This document shows, piece by piece, positions 2,850 to 11,879 of a DNA stretch of 64,000 nucleotides. The notes below the pieces were generated by a model. The model was not told the DNA's origin. It saw only the letters and a program-made list of their open reading frames with translations, and did no database searches. The stretch is taken from positions 182,528,001 to 182,592,000 of the forward strand of contig NC_042998.1 of the NCBI RefSeq assembly GCF_006345805.1. Reading direction: 5' to 3'. The first letter of the stretch is position 1; each line of letters opens with the position of its first letter. A program made the position numbers and the translations under genes. The stretch comes from Octopus sinensis. Its lineage: Eukaryota.

Positions 2850-2903
2850 CGTTTCAAATTCTGTCACCTCAATTCTGCTAGATTTAGGAGTTTGGACCAT
2901 TTC
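2850..2903 (-). CDS. Micro-exon 19, type A (EMVQTPKSSRIEVTEFET), identical to exon 17
   Basis: Same splice sites and 54-nt sequence as 8869-8922. Confidence 0.85.
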
Positions 2904-4619
2904 CTGTAAGATTAAATGAAATCAGAAACATTATTGTATTAAAATAATAAATTTTCAAAACAAATCATTTCTAATTTGTTAAAAGAACTCATGAATGTAT
3001 ACAGATATATATATATATAGATAGATAGATGATAAAGGTTAAAATACAAAAGCCATAATGGTAACAATGTTTAGTCTCAACATTACAATAAATACACTGC
3101 ACTTTTACTGTGAGCACATTTCCTCTTGTACGGAAACTAAAACTAACAAATACACATATGCACAGAGTACAACACAGACACTCCCATACACATATACTCA
3201 CACACACACCCACACACACACACTTTGCATAAGAATTTAAAATGGTCTTCATTCAGTAATTAATTCATCCACATATTTACAACATCATAATCTTATCTTC
3301 AAGATTATGTGTTGTTGGCACTACTTTTATAGTAAGAAGGGGTAATTCAATTTTGACTGTTAAATTTTGTCATCAATCAAAAGTTTACAACGCAAACAGT
3401 CACAATTCAAATTTTGGCAGTAACATTACTCTAAAGTGGTAGCAACACATTCCAGCATCTCTTCATTCTGAAGATGAGGCCATGAAGTTCTAGGAACGAA
3501 CTGAAAGGAAATTCTATGAAAATATGAAAAAGAACTTGATAAAAAAAATGTGCCACATAAAAAGCACTTGTGCTGGTGTCACGTAAAAAGCACACATGCT
3601 GCTGCCATGTAAGACCTACCATGATGGAGTCACATAAAAAGTACCTACACTGGTGTCTTGTAAAGAGCCCTCGCTACATTCTGTAAAGTGGTTGGCATTA
3701 GCAAGAACATCCAGCTATAGAAATCATGCTAAAATAAACAATTGAAGTCAGGTGCGGCTCTTCAGATTGCTAGCTCCTGTCAAACCATTCAACACATGCC
3801 AGCATGGAAAACGGATTTTAAATGACTTGTTTAGTTTATTTCTTCAGATTTTCTATAGAAATTATAGTCAGCCCTGATTTTGCTCCAACATTTCTTGAGA
3901 TCGAAGATGAAAACGGATAGTGGGAATACATGAAATATTTCAGGAATTTTTCGTCTTTCATCAGCACCCAGCCAACCTATAAATCATCCATGAACAAATT
4001 GATTAAACAGCTACTAAATACAGCAGTGTAACTTTACACAATATACCAATTATCAAAAAACATTTGTGAAGCTGGTGCATAAATATTAATGACGTATTAT
4101 TAATGTCAAAACAAAATTAGTGGTGGCTATAATTTCTATAGAAAATCTGTAGGGATAACTTTAACGAGTGATGTAATAGTTAACACAGCAGAACAGAGAC
4201 TTATAAAAACATTAGATATAATTTGTAGTATATCATGGTCACATAATGAAATACAGTGTCCCTACACATCATTAATATGAACATCATATATATGTATGTA
4301 TGTATTATATGTAAGTATATGTATGTGTGCATATATATATATATATAATATATATATATATATAATATATATAGACCGGAGCTTAAAATAAAGTATATAT
4401 ATATATATATATATATACATATATACATAGAGAGAGAGAAAGCGAGAGAGAGGTAGGCAGTCAGGATTTGCATAAGAAATTTTTATTTAGCTCTTTTGTC
4501 CTTTTGAGATTTTTATCAACACACTAAATAAATATTCGGTATCCAAATACTACCTCCATTTTTTTTAATATACATACATACATGCTTTTATGTGTACATA
4601 CATACATATGATATATATC

Positions 4620-4654
<35 letters not shown>

Positions 4655-5759
4655 CATACATGCATACATACATACATATATGTATATAGATATCTACCTC
4701 ATATGTGGGCAATTCTTTCTTTGGGTGTGCTTGTGGATCTGTTAGCTAACTCCTCATACATTGTTTTATCAATTTCAATGAAACTTGACACGTGAGGAGA
4801 ACTCATGTCTAGAAACCTCATGGCATACTCAAACTGTTGAAAAATTGACAGAAGGGCCCCTGGAAGGAATCCTTATATATAAACAAGGGAAATAACCCAT
4901 TCATTTACCTAAATTATTTGGTAAAAAGGAAATTGAGTATGCTTATTTCTTAGTATTTGAACTGTTAGAGTTATTTTAACAATTTATCCAGTACAGCCTT
5001 TAAACAAGTAAATAGTATTTTACTAAACAATAAATCAACTTATTTCGGTTAGTGACTTATTCACGAATATATCAACACCACCACCCCTGAGGGTAATATT
5101 CTCAAGGAATGCATGAAAGCCCTTTTCAGAGTTATTTACTTTAAATTGTTATCTCAAATTTGATTAGCCTGTTATTATGTAACATGCTTCACGATTATAG
5201 AATAATATACTTTATTAGTATTTCCTTCTATGTTCTATATACTCTGGGAATGCATTAAAGCCCTTTTTCAAGGCTACTTTATTTGAATTCTTACTATCCG
5301 ATAACTAATTTCATGTTATTGCATAACTTACTTCACAATTTGGGTATTCGTAATTTATTTAGAAGTCCTAAAATCAAGATGCTGTGTAAGAGAGTTCAGT
5401 ATTCTCTATAGATGCACAAAAACCGTTTTAAGGGATACATAATTTGTATCGCTGTTATTGGATTACATATAATACATCAAAAAGAAGTGAACTTGTTATG
5501 AAATCCACAGAATAAAACAAGAGTTCCTCTTTAGCGAATATGAAATATAATGTGTTTTCAATGTTATAATGATAAATCATTCCCTTGTAAAGATTCTGAT
5601 ATATTTTTGTACAAGAAATATGGTGGCCCTGTTAACATGTTGAATTTAGCAGTTTTATCTATCATGATAGACATATACATACATACACATACATACACAC
5701 ACACATACACACACACATACATACACACATACATACACACACATACATACATACATACA

Positions 5760-5792
<33 letters not shown>

Positions 5793-5875
5793 TATACTTA
5801 TACAAATATAGATGCATGTGTACTAAAGAAGATATTTGCTTCCTAAACCGAGGTCAACATGTCCAAAGTAATTAC

Positions 5876-5929
5876 CATTTCAAATTCTGTTGAGTCATGT
5901 TTGCTAGATCTAGGAAGTGGGCCCATTGG
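5876..5929 (-). CDS. Micro-exon 18, type B (PMGPLPRSSKHDSTEFEM)
   Basis: Acceptor tttatttaattttacAG, donor ATG|GTaatt, 54 nt, phase 0. Confidence 0.85.
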
Positions 5930-8868: not shown

Positions 8869-8922
8869 CGTTTCAAATTCTGTCACCTCAATTCTGCTAG
8901 ATTTAGGAGTTTGGACCATTTC
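8869..8922 (-). CDS. Micro-exon 17, type A (EMVQTPKSSRIEVTEFET)
   Basis: Acceptor tttcatttaatcttacAG, donor ACG|GTaatt, 54 nt; the other two frames contain stops (TGA, TAA), which fixes phase 0. Confidence 0.85.
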
Positions 8923-10341
8923 CTGTAAGATTAAATGAAATCAGAAACATTTTTGTATTAAAATAATAAATTTTCAAAACAAATCATTTCTAATTTGTTA
9001 AAAGAACTCATGAATGTATACAGATATATATATATATATAGATAGATGATAAAGGTTAAAATACAAAAGCCATAATGGTAACAATGTTTAGTCTCAACAT
9101 TACAATAAATACACTGCACTTTTACTGTGAGCACATTTCCTCTTGTACGGAAACTAAAACTAACAAATACACATATGCACACAGAGTACACACAGACACT
9201 CCCATACACATATACTCACACACACACCCACACACACCACTTTGCATAAGAATTTAAAATGGTCTTCATTCAGTAATTAATTCATCCACATATTTACAAC
9301 ATCATAATCTTATCTTCAAGATTATGTGTTGTTGGCACTACTTTTATAGTAAGAAGGGGTATTCAATTTTGACTGTTAAATTTTGTCATCAATCAAAAGT
9401 TTACAACGCAAACAGTCAAAATTTCAATTTGGCAGTAACATTACTCTAAAGTGGTAGCAACACATTCCAGCATCTCTTCATTCTGAAGATGAGGCCATGA
9501 AGTTCTAGGAACGAACTGAAAGGAAATTCTATGAAAATATGAAAAAGAACTTGATAAAAAAAATGTGCCACATAAAAAGCACTTGTGCTGGTGTCACGTA
9601 AAAAGCACACATGCTGCTGCCATGTAAGACCTACCATGATGGAGTCACATAAAGAGGTACCTACACTGGTGTCTTGTAAAGAGCCCTCGCTACATTCTGT
9701 AAAGTGGTTGGCATTAGCAAGAACATCCAGCTATAGAAATCATGCTAAAATAAACAATTGAAGTCAGGTGCAGCTCTTCAGATTGCTAGCTCCTGTCAAA
9801 CCATTCAACACATGCCAGCATGGAAAACGGATTTTAAACGACTTGTTTAGTTTATTTCTTCAGATTTTCTATAGAAATTATAGTCAGCCCTGATTTTGCT
9901 CCAACATTTCTTGAGATCGAAGATGAAAACGGATAGTGGGCATACATGAAATATTTCAGGAATTTTTCCTCTTTCATCAGCACCCAGCCAACCTATAAAT
10001 CATCCATGAACAAATTGATTAAACAGCTACTAAATACAGCAGTGTAACTTTACACAATATACCAATTATCAAAAAACATTTGTGAAGCTGGTGCATAAAT
10101 ATTAATGACGTATTATTAATGTCAAAACAAAATTAGTGGTGGCTATAATTTCTATAGAAAATCTGTAGGGATAACTTTAACGAGTGATGTAATAGTTAAC
10201 ACAGCAGCAAACAGAGACTTATAAAAACATTAGATATAATTTGTAGTATATCATGGTCACATAATGAAATACAGTGTCCCTACACATCATTAATATGGAC
10301 ATCATATATATGTATGTATGTATTATATGTAAGTATATGTA

Positions 10342-10379
<38 letters not shown>

Positions 10380-11710
10380 TACATAGAGAGAGAGAGAAAA
10401 AGAGAGAGAAAGAGAGAGAGACGTAGGCAGTCAGGATTTGCATAAGAAATTTTTATTTAGCTCTTTTGTCCTTTTGAGATTTTTATCAACACACTAAATA
10501 AATAGTCGGTATCCAAATACTACCTCCATTTATTTTTAATATACATACATACATACATGCTTTTATGTGTACATACATACATATGATATATATCATGTGT
10601 ATGTATATATATATATATATATATATATACATACATACATGCATACATACATACATATATGTATATAGATATCTACCTCATATGTGGGCAATTCTTTCTT
10701 TGGGTGTGCTTGTGGATCTGTTAGCTAACTCCTCATACATTGTTTTATCAATTTCAATGAAACTTGACACGTGAGGAGAACTCATGTCTAGAAACCTCAT
10801 GGCATACTCAAACTGTTGAAAAATTGACAGAAGGGCCCCTGGAAGGAATCCTTATATATAAACAAGGGAAATAACCCATTCATTTACCTAAATTATTTGG
10901 TAAAAAGGAAATTGAGTATGCTTATTTCTTAGTATTTGAACTGTTAGAGTTATTTTAACAATTTATCAGTACAGCCTTTAAACAAGTAAATAGTATTTTA
11001 CTAAACAATAAATCAACTTATTTCGGTTAGTGACTTATTCACGAATATATCAATACCACCACCCCTGAGGGTAATATTCTCAAGGAATGCACGAAAGCCC
11101 TTTTCAGAGTTATTTACTTTAAATTGTTATCTCAAATTTGATTAGCCTGTTATTATATAACATGCTTCACGATTATAGAATAATATACTTTATTAGTATT
11201 TCCTTCTATGTTCTATATACTCTGGGAATGCATTAAAGCCCTTTTTCGGGCTACTTTATTTGAATTCTTACTATCCGATAACTAATTTCATGTTATTACA
11301 TAACTTACTTCACAATTTGGGTATTCGTAATTTATTTAGAAGTCCTAAAATCAAGATCCTGTGTAAGAGAGTTCAGTATTCTCTATAGATGCACAAAAAC
11401 CGTTTTAAGGGATACATAATTTGTATTGCTGTTATTGGATTACATATAATACATCAAAAAGAAGTGAACTTGTTATGAAATCCACAGAATAAAACGAGTT
11501 CCTCTTTAGCGAATATGAAATAAATGTGTTTTCAATGTTATAATGATAAATCATTCCCTTGTAAAGATTCTGATATATTTTTGTACAAGAAATATGGTGG
11601 CCCTGTTAACATGTTGAATTTAGCAGTTTTATCTATCATGATAGACATATACATACACATACATACACACACACATACACACACACATACATACACACTT
11701 ACATACACAC

Positions 11711-11742
<32 letters not shown>

Positions 11743-11825
11743 TATACTTATACAAATATAGATGCATGTGTACTAAAGAAGATATTTGCTTCCTAAACCG
11801 AGGTCAACATGTCCAAAGTAATTAC

Positions 11826-11879
11826 CATTTCAAATTCTGTTGACTCATGTTTGCTAGATCTAGGTGATGGGCCCATTCG
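11826..11879 (-). CDS. Micro-exon 16, type B' (RMGPSPRSSKHESTEFEM)
   Basis: Acceptor tttatttaattttacAG, donor ATG|GTaatt, 54 nt, phase 0. Confidence 0.85.

Follow-up and report, generated by a model that had tools for sequence, protein, structure and literature searches.

Among the tandem repeats of a minus-strand gene in Octopus sinensis, the exons of neighbouring repeats are 15 to 50 times more diverged than the DNA that surrounds them, and in the four youngest units the exon and its 3-kb carrier repeat have decoupled genealogies. The analysis covered one genome and one 64-kb stretch, which we call the window. As the exon is far more diverged than its carrier repeat, the two have had differing histories, for which gene conversion and a selective burst are the candidate causes. 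Our best reading, held with moderate confidence, is that the exon variants predate the repeat backbone, and that gene conversion broke the link between the two.

Self-BLAST and a four-unit MAFFT alignment delimited four tandem units with a period of ~3.0 kb at positions 1 to 12011, each with one minus-strand exon: U1 (1 to 2991, A-type), U2 (2992 to 6017, B-type), U3 (6018 to 9010, A-type) and U4 (9011 to 12011, B′-type), all oriented on the minus strand. Because U1 is homologous to the other units from window base 1 onward, the array probably extends left beyond the window. An old, partly deleted fifth unit, U5 (12146 to 13205, minus strand), flanks the array, so that the order by exon is A-B-A-B′ followed by C. 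U5 with its exon C was absent from the first-pass annotation. It aligns to unit columns 4 to 413 and 2508 to 3023 only, lacks ~2.1 kb relative to U1 to U4, and its intron differs from theirs by 12 to 15% in substitutions (~14%). The earlier description of a young array is thus incomplete, as the array is flanked by an old unit and runs past the left window edge.

The four young exons, each 54 nt on the minus strand, are A1 (2850 to 2903, phase 0-0, peptide EMVQTPKSSRIEVTEFET), B (5876 to 5929, PMGPLPRSSKHDSTEFEM), A2 (8869 to 8922, the same sequence as A1) and B′ (11826 to 11879, RMGPSPRSSKHESTEFEM). A1 and A2 were placed by exact match, B by sequence match and B′ by the unit alignment, each with splice sites and an open frame. 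Exon C (13024 to 13077, minus strand, 54 nt, ERGPSRISSKTEVSEFEM) was identified by the U5 alignment and a profile search. All four young copies (4/4) have a pyrimidine tract and ttacag upstream and gtaatt downstream. Frame 0 is the sole frame open in all four and is open in C too (5/5), and none of the sense or antisense frames examined rendered the exon differences synonymous. Exon C is free of indels, whereas the U5 flanks contain 32 to 72 gap columns per 300 nt, 50 per 100 nt, and 5/5 copies retain ACAGAATTTGAAAYG, the 3′ third of the exon. From these features we conclude that the 54-nt segment is real coding sequence, a mini-exon belonging to a long gene on the minus strand.

Further mini-exons lie upstream of A to C within this gene, at 15702 to 63144. 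Six were recovered by a DNA profile search without an ORF filter, the first being an nhmmer match to the exon-plus-flank profile: 15702 to 15755 (54 nt, RSKSSLDKSVKGDLSYTD), 17898 to 17945 (48 nt, SKVYKIPKKQLSDPEM), 23186 to 23227 (42 nt, RKDSKRFKKDSLDI), 32177 to 32233 (57 nt, TSCMPAFRVTKFVDEGTDM), 56345 to 56395 (51 nt, GKYTSDVSYEDYSDFDS) and 61211 to 61258 (48 nt, GTSSMTPKDDDKDTEK). All six are on the minus strand, 42 to 57 nt long in multiples of 3, with AG/GT borders and open frames. Three 57-nt members of an older paralogous family (e36/e40/e47), also on the minus strand, lie at 36341 to 36397 (VQSVPVFESPTKEMKDAST), 40398 to 40454 (AKSTPAFETVTPDMKNSSS) and 47506 to 47562 (IKSVPSFEASKISMKLYTT). 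A regex scan with acceptor and donor profiles gave a 42-nt minus-strand mini-exon at 49383 to 49424 (MRSSTSSEMVESEI) and a possible one of 42 nt, with weak profile matches, at 63103 to 63144 on the same strand (SKSAASPRGARAGR). Altogether, at least 15 symmetric mini-exons with conserved acceptor and donor flanks and lengths divisible by 3 occupy one strand over 60 kb. The gene is cephalopod-like and has grown through repeated tandem duplication of exon-plus-intron units. Its product is probably a disordered repeat protein rich in S, K, E, T and D; the concatenated peptide is of low complexity, with one Cys in 261 residues, and the gene's N-terminus lies outside the window. The older exon families in the gene have pN ~ pS and even codon-position use, and thus give no sign of standing hyper-selection.

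An alternative to a coding exon is a hypermutable or unstable non-coding spot in a satellite-like repeat, where the frame and the splice-like flanks are fortuitous. The exon call was made from DNA sequence, the concatenated peptide had no database homologue and no Pfam domain, and chance 54-nt open frames are not rare. We nonetheless consider this reading highly unlikely, given the many same-strand segments with splice flanks, open frames and lengths divisible by 3, six of them found without regard to open frames, the indel-free exon amid indel-rich flanks, and the conserved 3′ third. The substitutions are also biased by codon position, their transition/transversion spectrum does not differ from that of the intron, and they are not adenine-targeted.

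Outside the exon, A- and B-type units differ by substitutions at 1.76% of positions (51/2904) with microsatellite columns included and at 1.2–1.5% without them. Fixed A- versus B-type differences occupy 11 of 2446 non-exon columns (0.45%) versus 13 of 54 exon columns (24%). In every A/B comparison the exon was the highest-scoring 54-column window in the unit (binomial P = 2e-14; ~7e-11 once corrected for all window positions), and the next-ranked windows were microsatellite misalignments. The differences form an island at 2851 to 2918 (minus strand, U1 coordinates, with the same columns in U2 to U4), delimited from the variable-column list and flank statistics. The island starts at intron position −15, stops at exon nt 53 and packs 17 A/B differences into these 68 nt. 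Two of these, at −7 and −15, are in the pyrimidine tract. Beside the island there are 0 fixed A/B differences in ~200 nt downstream and 0 in ~260 nt upstream. The B and B′ exons differ at 5 positions where 0.40 would be expected (P = 6e-5; P = 8e-3 if counted as 3 codon events), in units whose introns are 0.74% apart, with 1 difference in ~375 nt of immediate flank; this means that an exon-limited process was active after the last duplication, a point against our preferred reading. The exon positions and difference counts given in the first-pass annotation were all reproduced. It had proposed a windowed comparison of the four units, in which the exon did stand out, and had held that A/B intron divergence similar to that of the exon would overturn its claim; we found 1.2–1.8% in the intron against 15/54 in the exon.

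Tandem 3-kb repeats with long microsatellites are difficult to assemble, and the copies are known from the assembly alone. Collapse or consensus polishing could have inflated the intron identity, or the exon differences could be chimeric. We judge such an artefact very improbable. Unit-specific substitutions (14, 11, 13 and 4 in U1 to U4, the most in U1), together with private indels and differing microsatellite lengths in each unit, argue that the units are not collapsed copies, and the window contains no N (count = 0). Moreover, the exon differences are in frame, without stops or indels, and biased by codon position, which errors would not yield.

Exons A and B differ at 15/54 nt in 10 codons and B and B′ at 5/54 nt in codons 1, 5 and 12, all of them replacements, while A1 and A2 have 0 differences. 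Exon C differs from A at 11 nt and from both B and B′ at 15 nt. Codons 1, 5, 11 and 13 each differ at 2–3 positions, and whole-codon multi-nucleotide replacements (GTG/TCA, CTT/TCA, GAA/CGA) separate the variants. At codon 5, 3/3 positions differ between B and B′, though the flanks are 99.7% identical; the codon is AGT in C, ACT in A and TCA in B′. Such a switch of serine codon family, with the threonine intermediate kept, is typical of long divergence. The reconstructed peptide of the A/B ancestor is E M G P x P x S S K x E V T E F E M. Adenine-specific templated diversification of the DGR type was considered and rejected, as only 5/15 of the A-B differences fall at A in exon A and 3 in exon B; no template copy for it was found within the 64-kb window.

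Does this pattern demonstrate positive selection, as had been argued from the absence of purely synonymous codon differences? That absence is real for both A-B and B-B′, but it is compatible with random mutation: random substitution would leave no purely synonymous codon with P = 0.13 in A-B and 0.33 in B-B′, neither significant. The Nei-Gojobori estimates for A-B are dN 0.43 and dS 0.10, and the resulting dN/dS of 4.4 hangs on a single fractional synonymous step (Sd = 1); dN/dS is >=1 for every exon pair, which lends selection a measure of separate support. So does codon position, with 15/25 parsimony changes at second positions (P = 0.006) and 5 sites with three states, all at codon positions 1–2. 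Set against a simple fast-exon reading are the equidistance of C, the identity of A1 and A2, and the pN ~ pS of the gene's other families. The purely synonymous A-B differences number 0 to 1, and the probability of none is 0.21 at 14% neutral divergence versus 0.86 at 1.4%, so this scarcity slightly favours a young exon over an old one.

The main rival to our reading takes the introns at face value: the units are as young as these indicate, and each tandem duplication was followed by a burst of adaptive replacement in the 18-residue peptide, by point or multi-nucleotide mutation with positive selection, that ended in the A lineage and is still going in the B lineage. The edges of the island coincide with the coding segment, as selection on the peptide predicts; replacements account for 10/10 and 3/3 differing codons, with purely synonymous change essentially absent; the second-position excess and the three-state sites are in keeping with it; and the B/B′ divergence postdates the last duplication. 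It needs no donor, and there is precedent in snake toxin genes, where exons outpace introns (PMC2474615). We regard this burst as possible but somewhat doubtful. It requires ~13 fixed replacements in 18 codons during 0.45% neutral change, or ~50 times the neutral rate, faster than even conotoxins are known to evolve, and then a sudden halt, with 0 changes in both A copies. It also leaves to coincidence the fact that A, B and old exon C are equidistant, neither its dN/dS nor its all-nonsynonymous count is significant individually, and the gene's other exons are at pN ~ pS.

Comparison of the exon and intron genealogies bears directly on this choice. Measured on the exon, the three variants radiate as a star (A-C 11, B-C 15, A-B 15); on the intron they nest deeply (A-B 1.4%, A/B-C ~14%). 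Dated by the intron clock, branches A and B would evolve at 15 and 25 times the neutral rate, and branch C at 0.8 times that rate; with the A, B, C split set at the age of C, the three branches run at 1.5–2.5 times neutral. The absence of change between A1 and A2 since the 6-kb duplication argues that the exon is not intrinsically fast. Within U1 to U4, the intron tree is almost star-like (1.38% between types, 0.98% within). Over the 400 nt adjoining the exon, A-type U3 has 2 differences from the B-type units and 5 from U1, two XXYY sites 100 nt apart conflict with the XYXY tree, and XYXY sites cluster with P between 0.01 and 0.16 by counting method. The evidence for intron conversion, direct and statistical, is modest. 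The equidistant C, the unchanged A1 and A2, and the families at pN ~ pS favour conversion-decoupled histories, and the differences at −7 and −15 match old-level divergence inside the island.

We therefore return to old exon variants as the preferred reading. We hypothesize that A, B and B′ predate the apparent age of the repeat backbone, and that gene conversion or unequal exchange between units makes or keeps the introns near-identical without levelling the exon differences. Two versions can be envisaged. In the first, selection would remove conversions that erase peptide differences, as in the Teshima-Innan "peak of divergence" model. Homogenising introns that were ~14% diverged is mechanistically hard, so under this version the introns would never have been allowed to diverge; the near-neutral exon bodies elsewhere in the gene count against selection guarding exon diversity. 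In the second, short exon-sized patches would be imported from diverged paralogous mini-exons. Homology between old and young units is confined to the exon and ~40-nt splice flanks, so such patches could be exon-limited without any selection. The second-codon-position excess is outside the predictions of neutral patch import. We found no donor for any exon variant within the 64-kb window, and this version thus depends on sequence outside it. A 6-kb (A+B) duplication would then have given A-B-A-B′, which explains A1 = A2, and protein-level selection for replacement changes would also act to some degree. The first-pass annotation had listed, with no preference among them, positive selection on the peptide, homogenisation of the introns that spares the exon, and replacement of the exon through conversion by a donor copy. 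The contrast behind all three is highly significant, but selection was not demonstrated by the argument given, and the 64-kb window holds no donor.

We also considered that the array is a diversification cassette, in which new copies are remodelled within ~0.2–0.5% neutral divergence by exon-restricted, codon-scale replacement under positive selection. This is unlikely in our view. If true, it would take an ASSET-like process beyond venom genes, at a pace faster than any on record, and a cephalopod protein might draw alternative 18-residue modules from it.

Divergence peaks over selected exon sites in converting duplicates are known from the Teshima and Innan model, primate red/green opsin exon 5 and RHCE/RHD (PMC3924837). 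The octopus array has the same near-identical introns in tandem paralogues and a narrow peak on coding sites (15/54 in the exon versus 1.2–1.8% elsewhere), along with a star-like intron tree and some incompatible sites. It differs in that the paralogues are exons inside one gene as opposed to whole genes, that the peak is ~26% and ~70 nt wide as opposed to a few per cent, that many sites differ as opposed to one or two key residues, and that concerted evolution is judged here from the paralogues of one genome alone.

Evolution of exons faster than introns, as documented in snake toxin genes (PMC2474615), and the ASSET-type families offer a second comparison. Here too the exon is more divergent than the intron, with near-identical introns, radical short exon changes and whole-codon switches, without intermediates and without a known donor. 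In the octopus, however, a single gene contains all the copies as tandem exons, exon length is strictly constant, no segment having been inserted or deleted, and the product is a low-complexity repeat protein without signs of a toxin, secretion or a cysteine scaffold. Membership in a secreted toxin or host-interaction family was rejected for the part of the gene inside the window, which excludes the N-terminus, given no Pfam domain or homologue, the low complexity and the single Cys in 261 residues.

Tandem exon arrays such as the Dscam clusters share the equal exon length and phase, homologous splice flanks, diversified exon bodies, and an origin by duplication of exon together with intron; five 54-nt phase-0 exons with ttacag/gtaat flanks in homologous units agree with tandem exon duplication in the octopus array. 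Its 3-kb introns are almost wholly identical, whereas Dscam-type arrays have short conserved elements only. Because exon length is a multiple of 3, all copies could be included together and the reading frame does not enforce exclusivity. An inverted-repeat scan of 8000 to 16000 for docking/selector complementarity returned only microsatellite pairs and a local palindrome at 13289 to 13494. A final parallel is the MHC class I and II genes, where introns are homogenised by recombination and peptide-binding exons keep old, selected diversity. That diversity is allelic or inter-locus and under balancing selection, whereas here it lies between repeats of one gene that has no immune-type domain; common to both systems are exon lineages that seem to predate the introns beside them and a predominance of replacement changes.

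Four head-to-tail units of ~3.0 kb each, designated U1 (1-2991), U2 (2992-6017), U3 (6018-9010) and U4 (9011-12011), fill the leftmost 12 kb of the window and share 96-98% identity by self-BLAST with gaps included. As homology is present from window base 1, the array probably continues leftward, which is the downstream direction in the gene. Each of the four units carries one 54-nt minus-strand segment: exon A1 in U1 (2850-2903), exon B in U2 (5876-5929), exon A2 in U3 (8869-8922) and exon B′ in U4 (11826-11879). A2 is identical to A1, with 0 differences. Read on the minus strand, all of them share an upstream pyrimidine tract that ends in ttacag and a downstream gtaatt, and frame 0 is the sole frame open across all copies. 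Antisense coding was considered and rejected, since the one antisense frame that is open in all copies lacks splice signals and the differences alter its amino acids. More generally, no sense or antisense frame makes the exon differences synonymous.

The first-pass annotation described this as a young array, a label that covers part of the picture, and does not cite an older flanking unit with an exon of its own. This fifth unit, U5 (12146-13205), is alignable with the young unit at both extremities only, lacks ~2.1 kb of it, and has introns that have diverged from those of U1-U4 by 12-15% in substitutions. The gap falls at window positions 12598-12702 and corresponds to columns 413-2508 of the unit (in U4, for instance, 9424-11500), which are present in all of U1-U4. 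It represents either a deletion in U5 or an insertion in the ancestor of U1-U4 before amplification, a distinction that bears on dating of the array. Exon C (13024-13077), the copy in U5, is 54 nt, indel-free and encodes ERGPSRISSKTEVSEFEM. Across the five exon copies there are zero indels, as compared to 32-72 gap columns per 300 nt in the flanks of the C unit. Just beyond the upstream end of the array is a near-perfect palindrome (13289-13494), whose 93-nt arms show 99% complementarity across a 20-nt loop; an (AT)n(AG)n tract comes next. The palindrome is non-microsatellite and single copy in the window, and is a candidate foldback element, MITE-like element or long intronic hairpin.

Exons A and B were initially reported to differ at 15/54 nt in 10 codons, and B and B′ at 5/54 nt in 3 codons, with every differing codon a replacement; our counts agree. 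Outside the exon, the A-type units (U1 and U3) diverge from the B-type units (U2 and U4) by 1.76% (51/2904) with microsatellite columns included, and by 1.2-1.5% with microsatellites masked. Columns that separate the two A-type units from the two B-type units (pattern XYXY) amount to 11 of 2446 outside the exon (0.45%), versus 13 of 54 within it. In all A/B comparisons the exon is the top-diverging 54-column window of the unit, with runner-up windows that are misalignments of (AT)n, (AG)n or (ATAC)n tracts. The binomial P for the exon window is 2e-14, or ~7e-11 when corrected for all window positions, which bears out the observation that the exon is far more divergent than the intron. Between B and B′, 5 differences are seen where 0.40 are expected (P=6e-5), a result that weakens to P=8e-3 when these are taken as three codon events. 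The borders of the island are sharp, running from pyrimidine-tract differences at -15 and -7 through exon nt 53; beyond them, ~200 nt on the downstream side and ~260 nt on the upstream side lack any fixed A/B difference. The result is an island ~70 nt wide and ~26% diverged within 3-kb repeats that are ~98.5% identical. The exon-versus-intron contrast is real, extreme and statistically secure. We consider it very unlikely that an assembly artefact generated the pattern, as each of U1-U4 is distinguished by substitutions and indels found in no other unit and by its microsatellite lengths, and the exon differences keep the reading frame.

The key result is that the exon and intron trees disagree. 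In the intron, A-type and B-type units are 1.4% apart and both are ~14% from C. The exon distances are 15 differences for A-B, 11 for A-C, and 15 for both B-C and B′-C, giving star branch lengths of 5.5 for A, 9.5 for B, and 5.5 for C plus stem. When these branches are placed on the intron clock, the C branch evolves at 0.8x neutral, the A branch at 15x and the B branch at 25x. Fixed A/B changes would then have accumulated at ~50x the intron-site rate, after which the A exon stayed unchanged in two lineages. If the split of A, B and C is instead placed at about the age of the C unit, all three branches run at 1.5-2.5x neutral. Codon 5 (2889-2891, 5915-5917, 11865-11867 and 13063-13065) also looks old, reading AGT (Ser) in C, ACT (Thr) in A, TCA (Ser) in B′ and CTT (Leu) in B. 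We observe that the serine codon families are switched at this codon, with the classical intermediate, Thr, present in A, and that B and B′ are unlike at all three positions while their flanks are 99.7% identical.

The genealogy of the introns is close to star-shaped, with between-type divergence of 1.38% and within-type divergence of 0.98%. Over the 400 nt that border the exon, U3 has 2 differences from the B-type units and 5 from U1, its fellow A-type unit, and the A/B tree is contradicted by two XXYY sites lying 100 nt from each other. The sites that do support the A/B split are bunched at approximately columns 1550-1880 of the alignment, where a 21-nt indel also separates A-type from B-type units, but as proof of conversion this clustering is of only marginal significance (P 0.01-0.16). 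A search of the window with an exon-plus-flank nhmmer profile found no donor for the exon variants. Searching with 10-14-mers of each variant on both strands returned chance-level 10-11-mers only, and therefore the window contains neither a donor nor a local template-switch source.

Positive selection had been argued from the lack of synonymous changes. Zero purely synonymous codons would arise by chance in 13% of cases for 15 random substitutions and 33% for 5, so the argument is not significant on its own for A-B or B-B′. Likewise, the Nei-Gojobori estimate for A-B has dN (0.43) exceeding dS (0.10), with one fractional synonymous step, but this is not significant alone. A parsimony count across the four exon variants (A, B, B′ and C) places 15 of 25 changes on second codon positions (P=0.006), with 6 on first and 4 on third positions, and all five sites showing three bases are at codon positions 1 or 2. 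Taken together, these features lend moderate support, in part post hoc, to the view that replacement changes were favored. A special mutational process found no support, because transition/transversion ratios are alike in exon and intron (P=0.56). Adenine-targeted mutagenesis like that of diversity-generating retroelements (DGRs) is ruled out by the exon sequences themselves, and an inverted-repeat scan of 8000-16000 found no docking/selector RNA pairing.

The exons belong to a larger set. A DNA profile built from the five exons with 30-nt flanks, applied with no ORF filter, detected six further matches, all on the minus strand with AG and GT borders. These are 42-57 nt, each a multiple of three and open in the splice-set frame. 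With extras from a splice-pattern scan, the mini-exons total at least 15 between 2850 and 61258. They have a pyrimidine-rich acceptor flank in common. Among the five exons of U1-U5, the 3′ third (ACAGAATTTGAAAYG) does not vary. We also noted a conserved donor-side intron motif, approximately gtaWWWatttnnnatatattgat, which almost all minus-strand mini-exons have ~10-30 nt downstream with respect to transcription (17863-17897, 23152-23185, 49346-49382 and 56312-56344 are examples). This motif is common to mini-exons with otherwise unalignable introns, and it may either act as an intronic splicing element that helps to define micro-exons or be left over from the ancestral duplicated unit. The concatenated mini-exon peptide (261 aa) is 18% S, 11% K, 11% E, 10% T and 8% D, has no Pfam family, and has zero relatives among 5.8 billion proteins. 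Conserved motifs of the exons, S-S-K/R-x-E and T/S-E-F-E, may correspond to acidophilic kinase sites, which they resemble. The conserved exon/intron junction gave 0 matches in a metagenome DNA scan, and a spurious antisense ORF used as a protein query gave only microsatellite-encoded low-complexity matches. Given the mini-exon architecture, the composition, and the absent Pfam family and relatives, we conclude that the window is the interior of one long gene of symmetric mini-exons, the product of which is low-complexity and probably disordered. The gene grew via duplication of exon-plus-intron units. It is highly improbable that the island is instead a non-coding hypermutable spot, an explanation at odds with this gene-wide exon architecture and with the ordinary transition/transversion spectrum.

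Upstream in the same gene is an older family of 57-nt exons, three of which, with upstream flank, span 36341-36527 (e36), 40398-40584 (e40) and 47506-47692 (e47); e32 (32177-32233) is a more distant member. In this family codon positions are used evenly and pN is about equal to pS, which suggests that exon bodies normally evolve close to neutrality. The ~130-nt upstream intron flank of these exons has diverged 15-22%, versus 28-47% in the exon. The surrounding sequence is AT-rich and rich in microsatellites and SINEs. A dispersed SINE-like family (~16796-17212, 18615-18950, 32638-33054, 39709-39996, 55931-56227 and 62678-62956) carries spurious ORFs, with a 68-nt tandem triplication at 16860-17041, and SINE-related 26-nt motifs (GTGCCACGTAAAAAGCACC...) occur within every array unit. 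Scans of the whole window, this family included, against Rfam and for tRNAs returned no matches. The mini-exon gene introns also contain LINE reverse-transcriptase/ORF fragments at 36724-37656 (plus strand) and 20950-21474 (minus strand), and among named proteins the reverse-transcriptase fragment is closest to a hypothetical one from the octopod Argonauta hians, at 60% identity. This match, along with the AT-, microsatellite- and SINE-rich sequence, hints at a cephalopod-like genome.

The candidate explanations proposed at first pass, namely selection on the peptide, intron homogenization that spares the exon, or conversion from a donor copy, were appropriate ones. With about even confidence, we favor decoupled exon and intron histories produced by non-reciprocal exchange. 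Such exchange dispenses with a 15-50-fold burst that then stops, accounts for the equidistance of A, B and C, and fits the star-like and partly incompatible intron genealogy. It could operate in two ways. Selection may weed out conversions that erase exon differences, or older paralogous mini-exons may supply exon-sized patches, which would be limited to the exon because old and young units can be aligned only in the exon and splice flanks. A burst of positive selection on the exon after duplication is possible though less probable. The weak points of the exchange model speak for it: the window holds no donor, B and B′ have grown apart since the last duplication, there are hardly any purely synonymous differences, and neutral import leaves the second-position excess unexplained. 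Against it is the need for a 15-50-fold rate followed by a halt in the A exon.

If the exons are old and the introns were homogenized, this is an unusually clean intragenic divergence island delimited by selection or homology, useful for studying conversion tract limits and how repeat proteins keep neighboring repeats unlike. If change in the exon followed duplication, the case would rank with the fastest divergences on record for protein-coding sequence and would extend the unexplained snake-toxin exon segment switching to a non-toxin gene of a mollusc. Either reading shows the growth and diversification of a symmetric mini-exon gene, and under either, intron identity is unusable for dating exon duplicates. 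Islands of exon divergence within duplicates that are otherwise homogeneous are a known class, to which this pattern belongs. In primate red/green opsins, divergence peaks at selected exon sites while introns are homogenized by gene conversion, and Teshima and Innan modeled such divergence peaks (PMC3924837). In the ASSET process of snake three-finger toxin genes, exon segments change radically between near-identical introns, with the donor not known (PMC2474615). The octopus case is unusual in being intragenic and in taking a mini-exon form, and it resides in an uncharacterized cephalopod-like gene.
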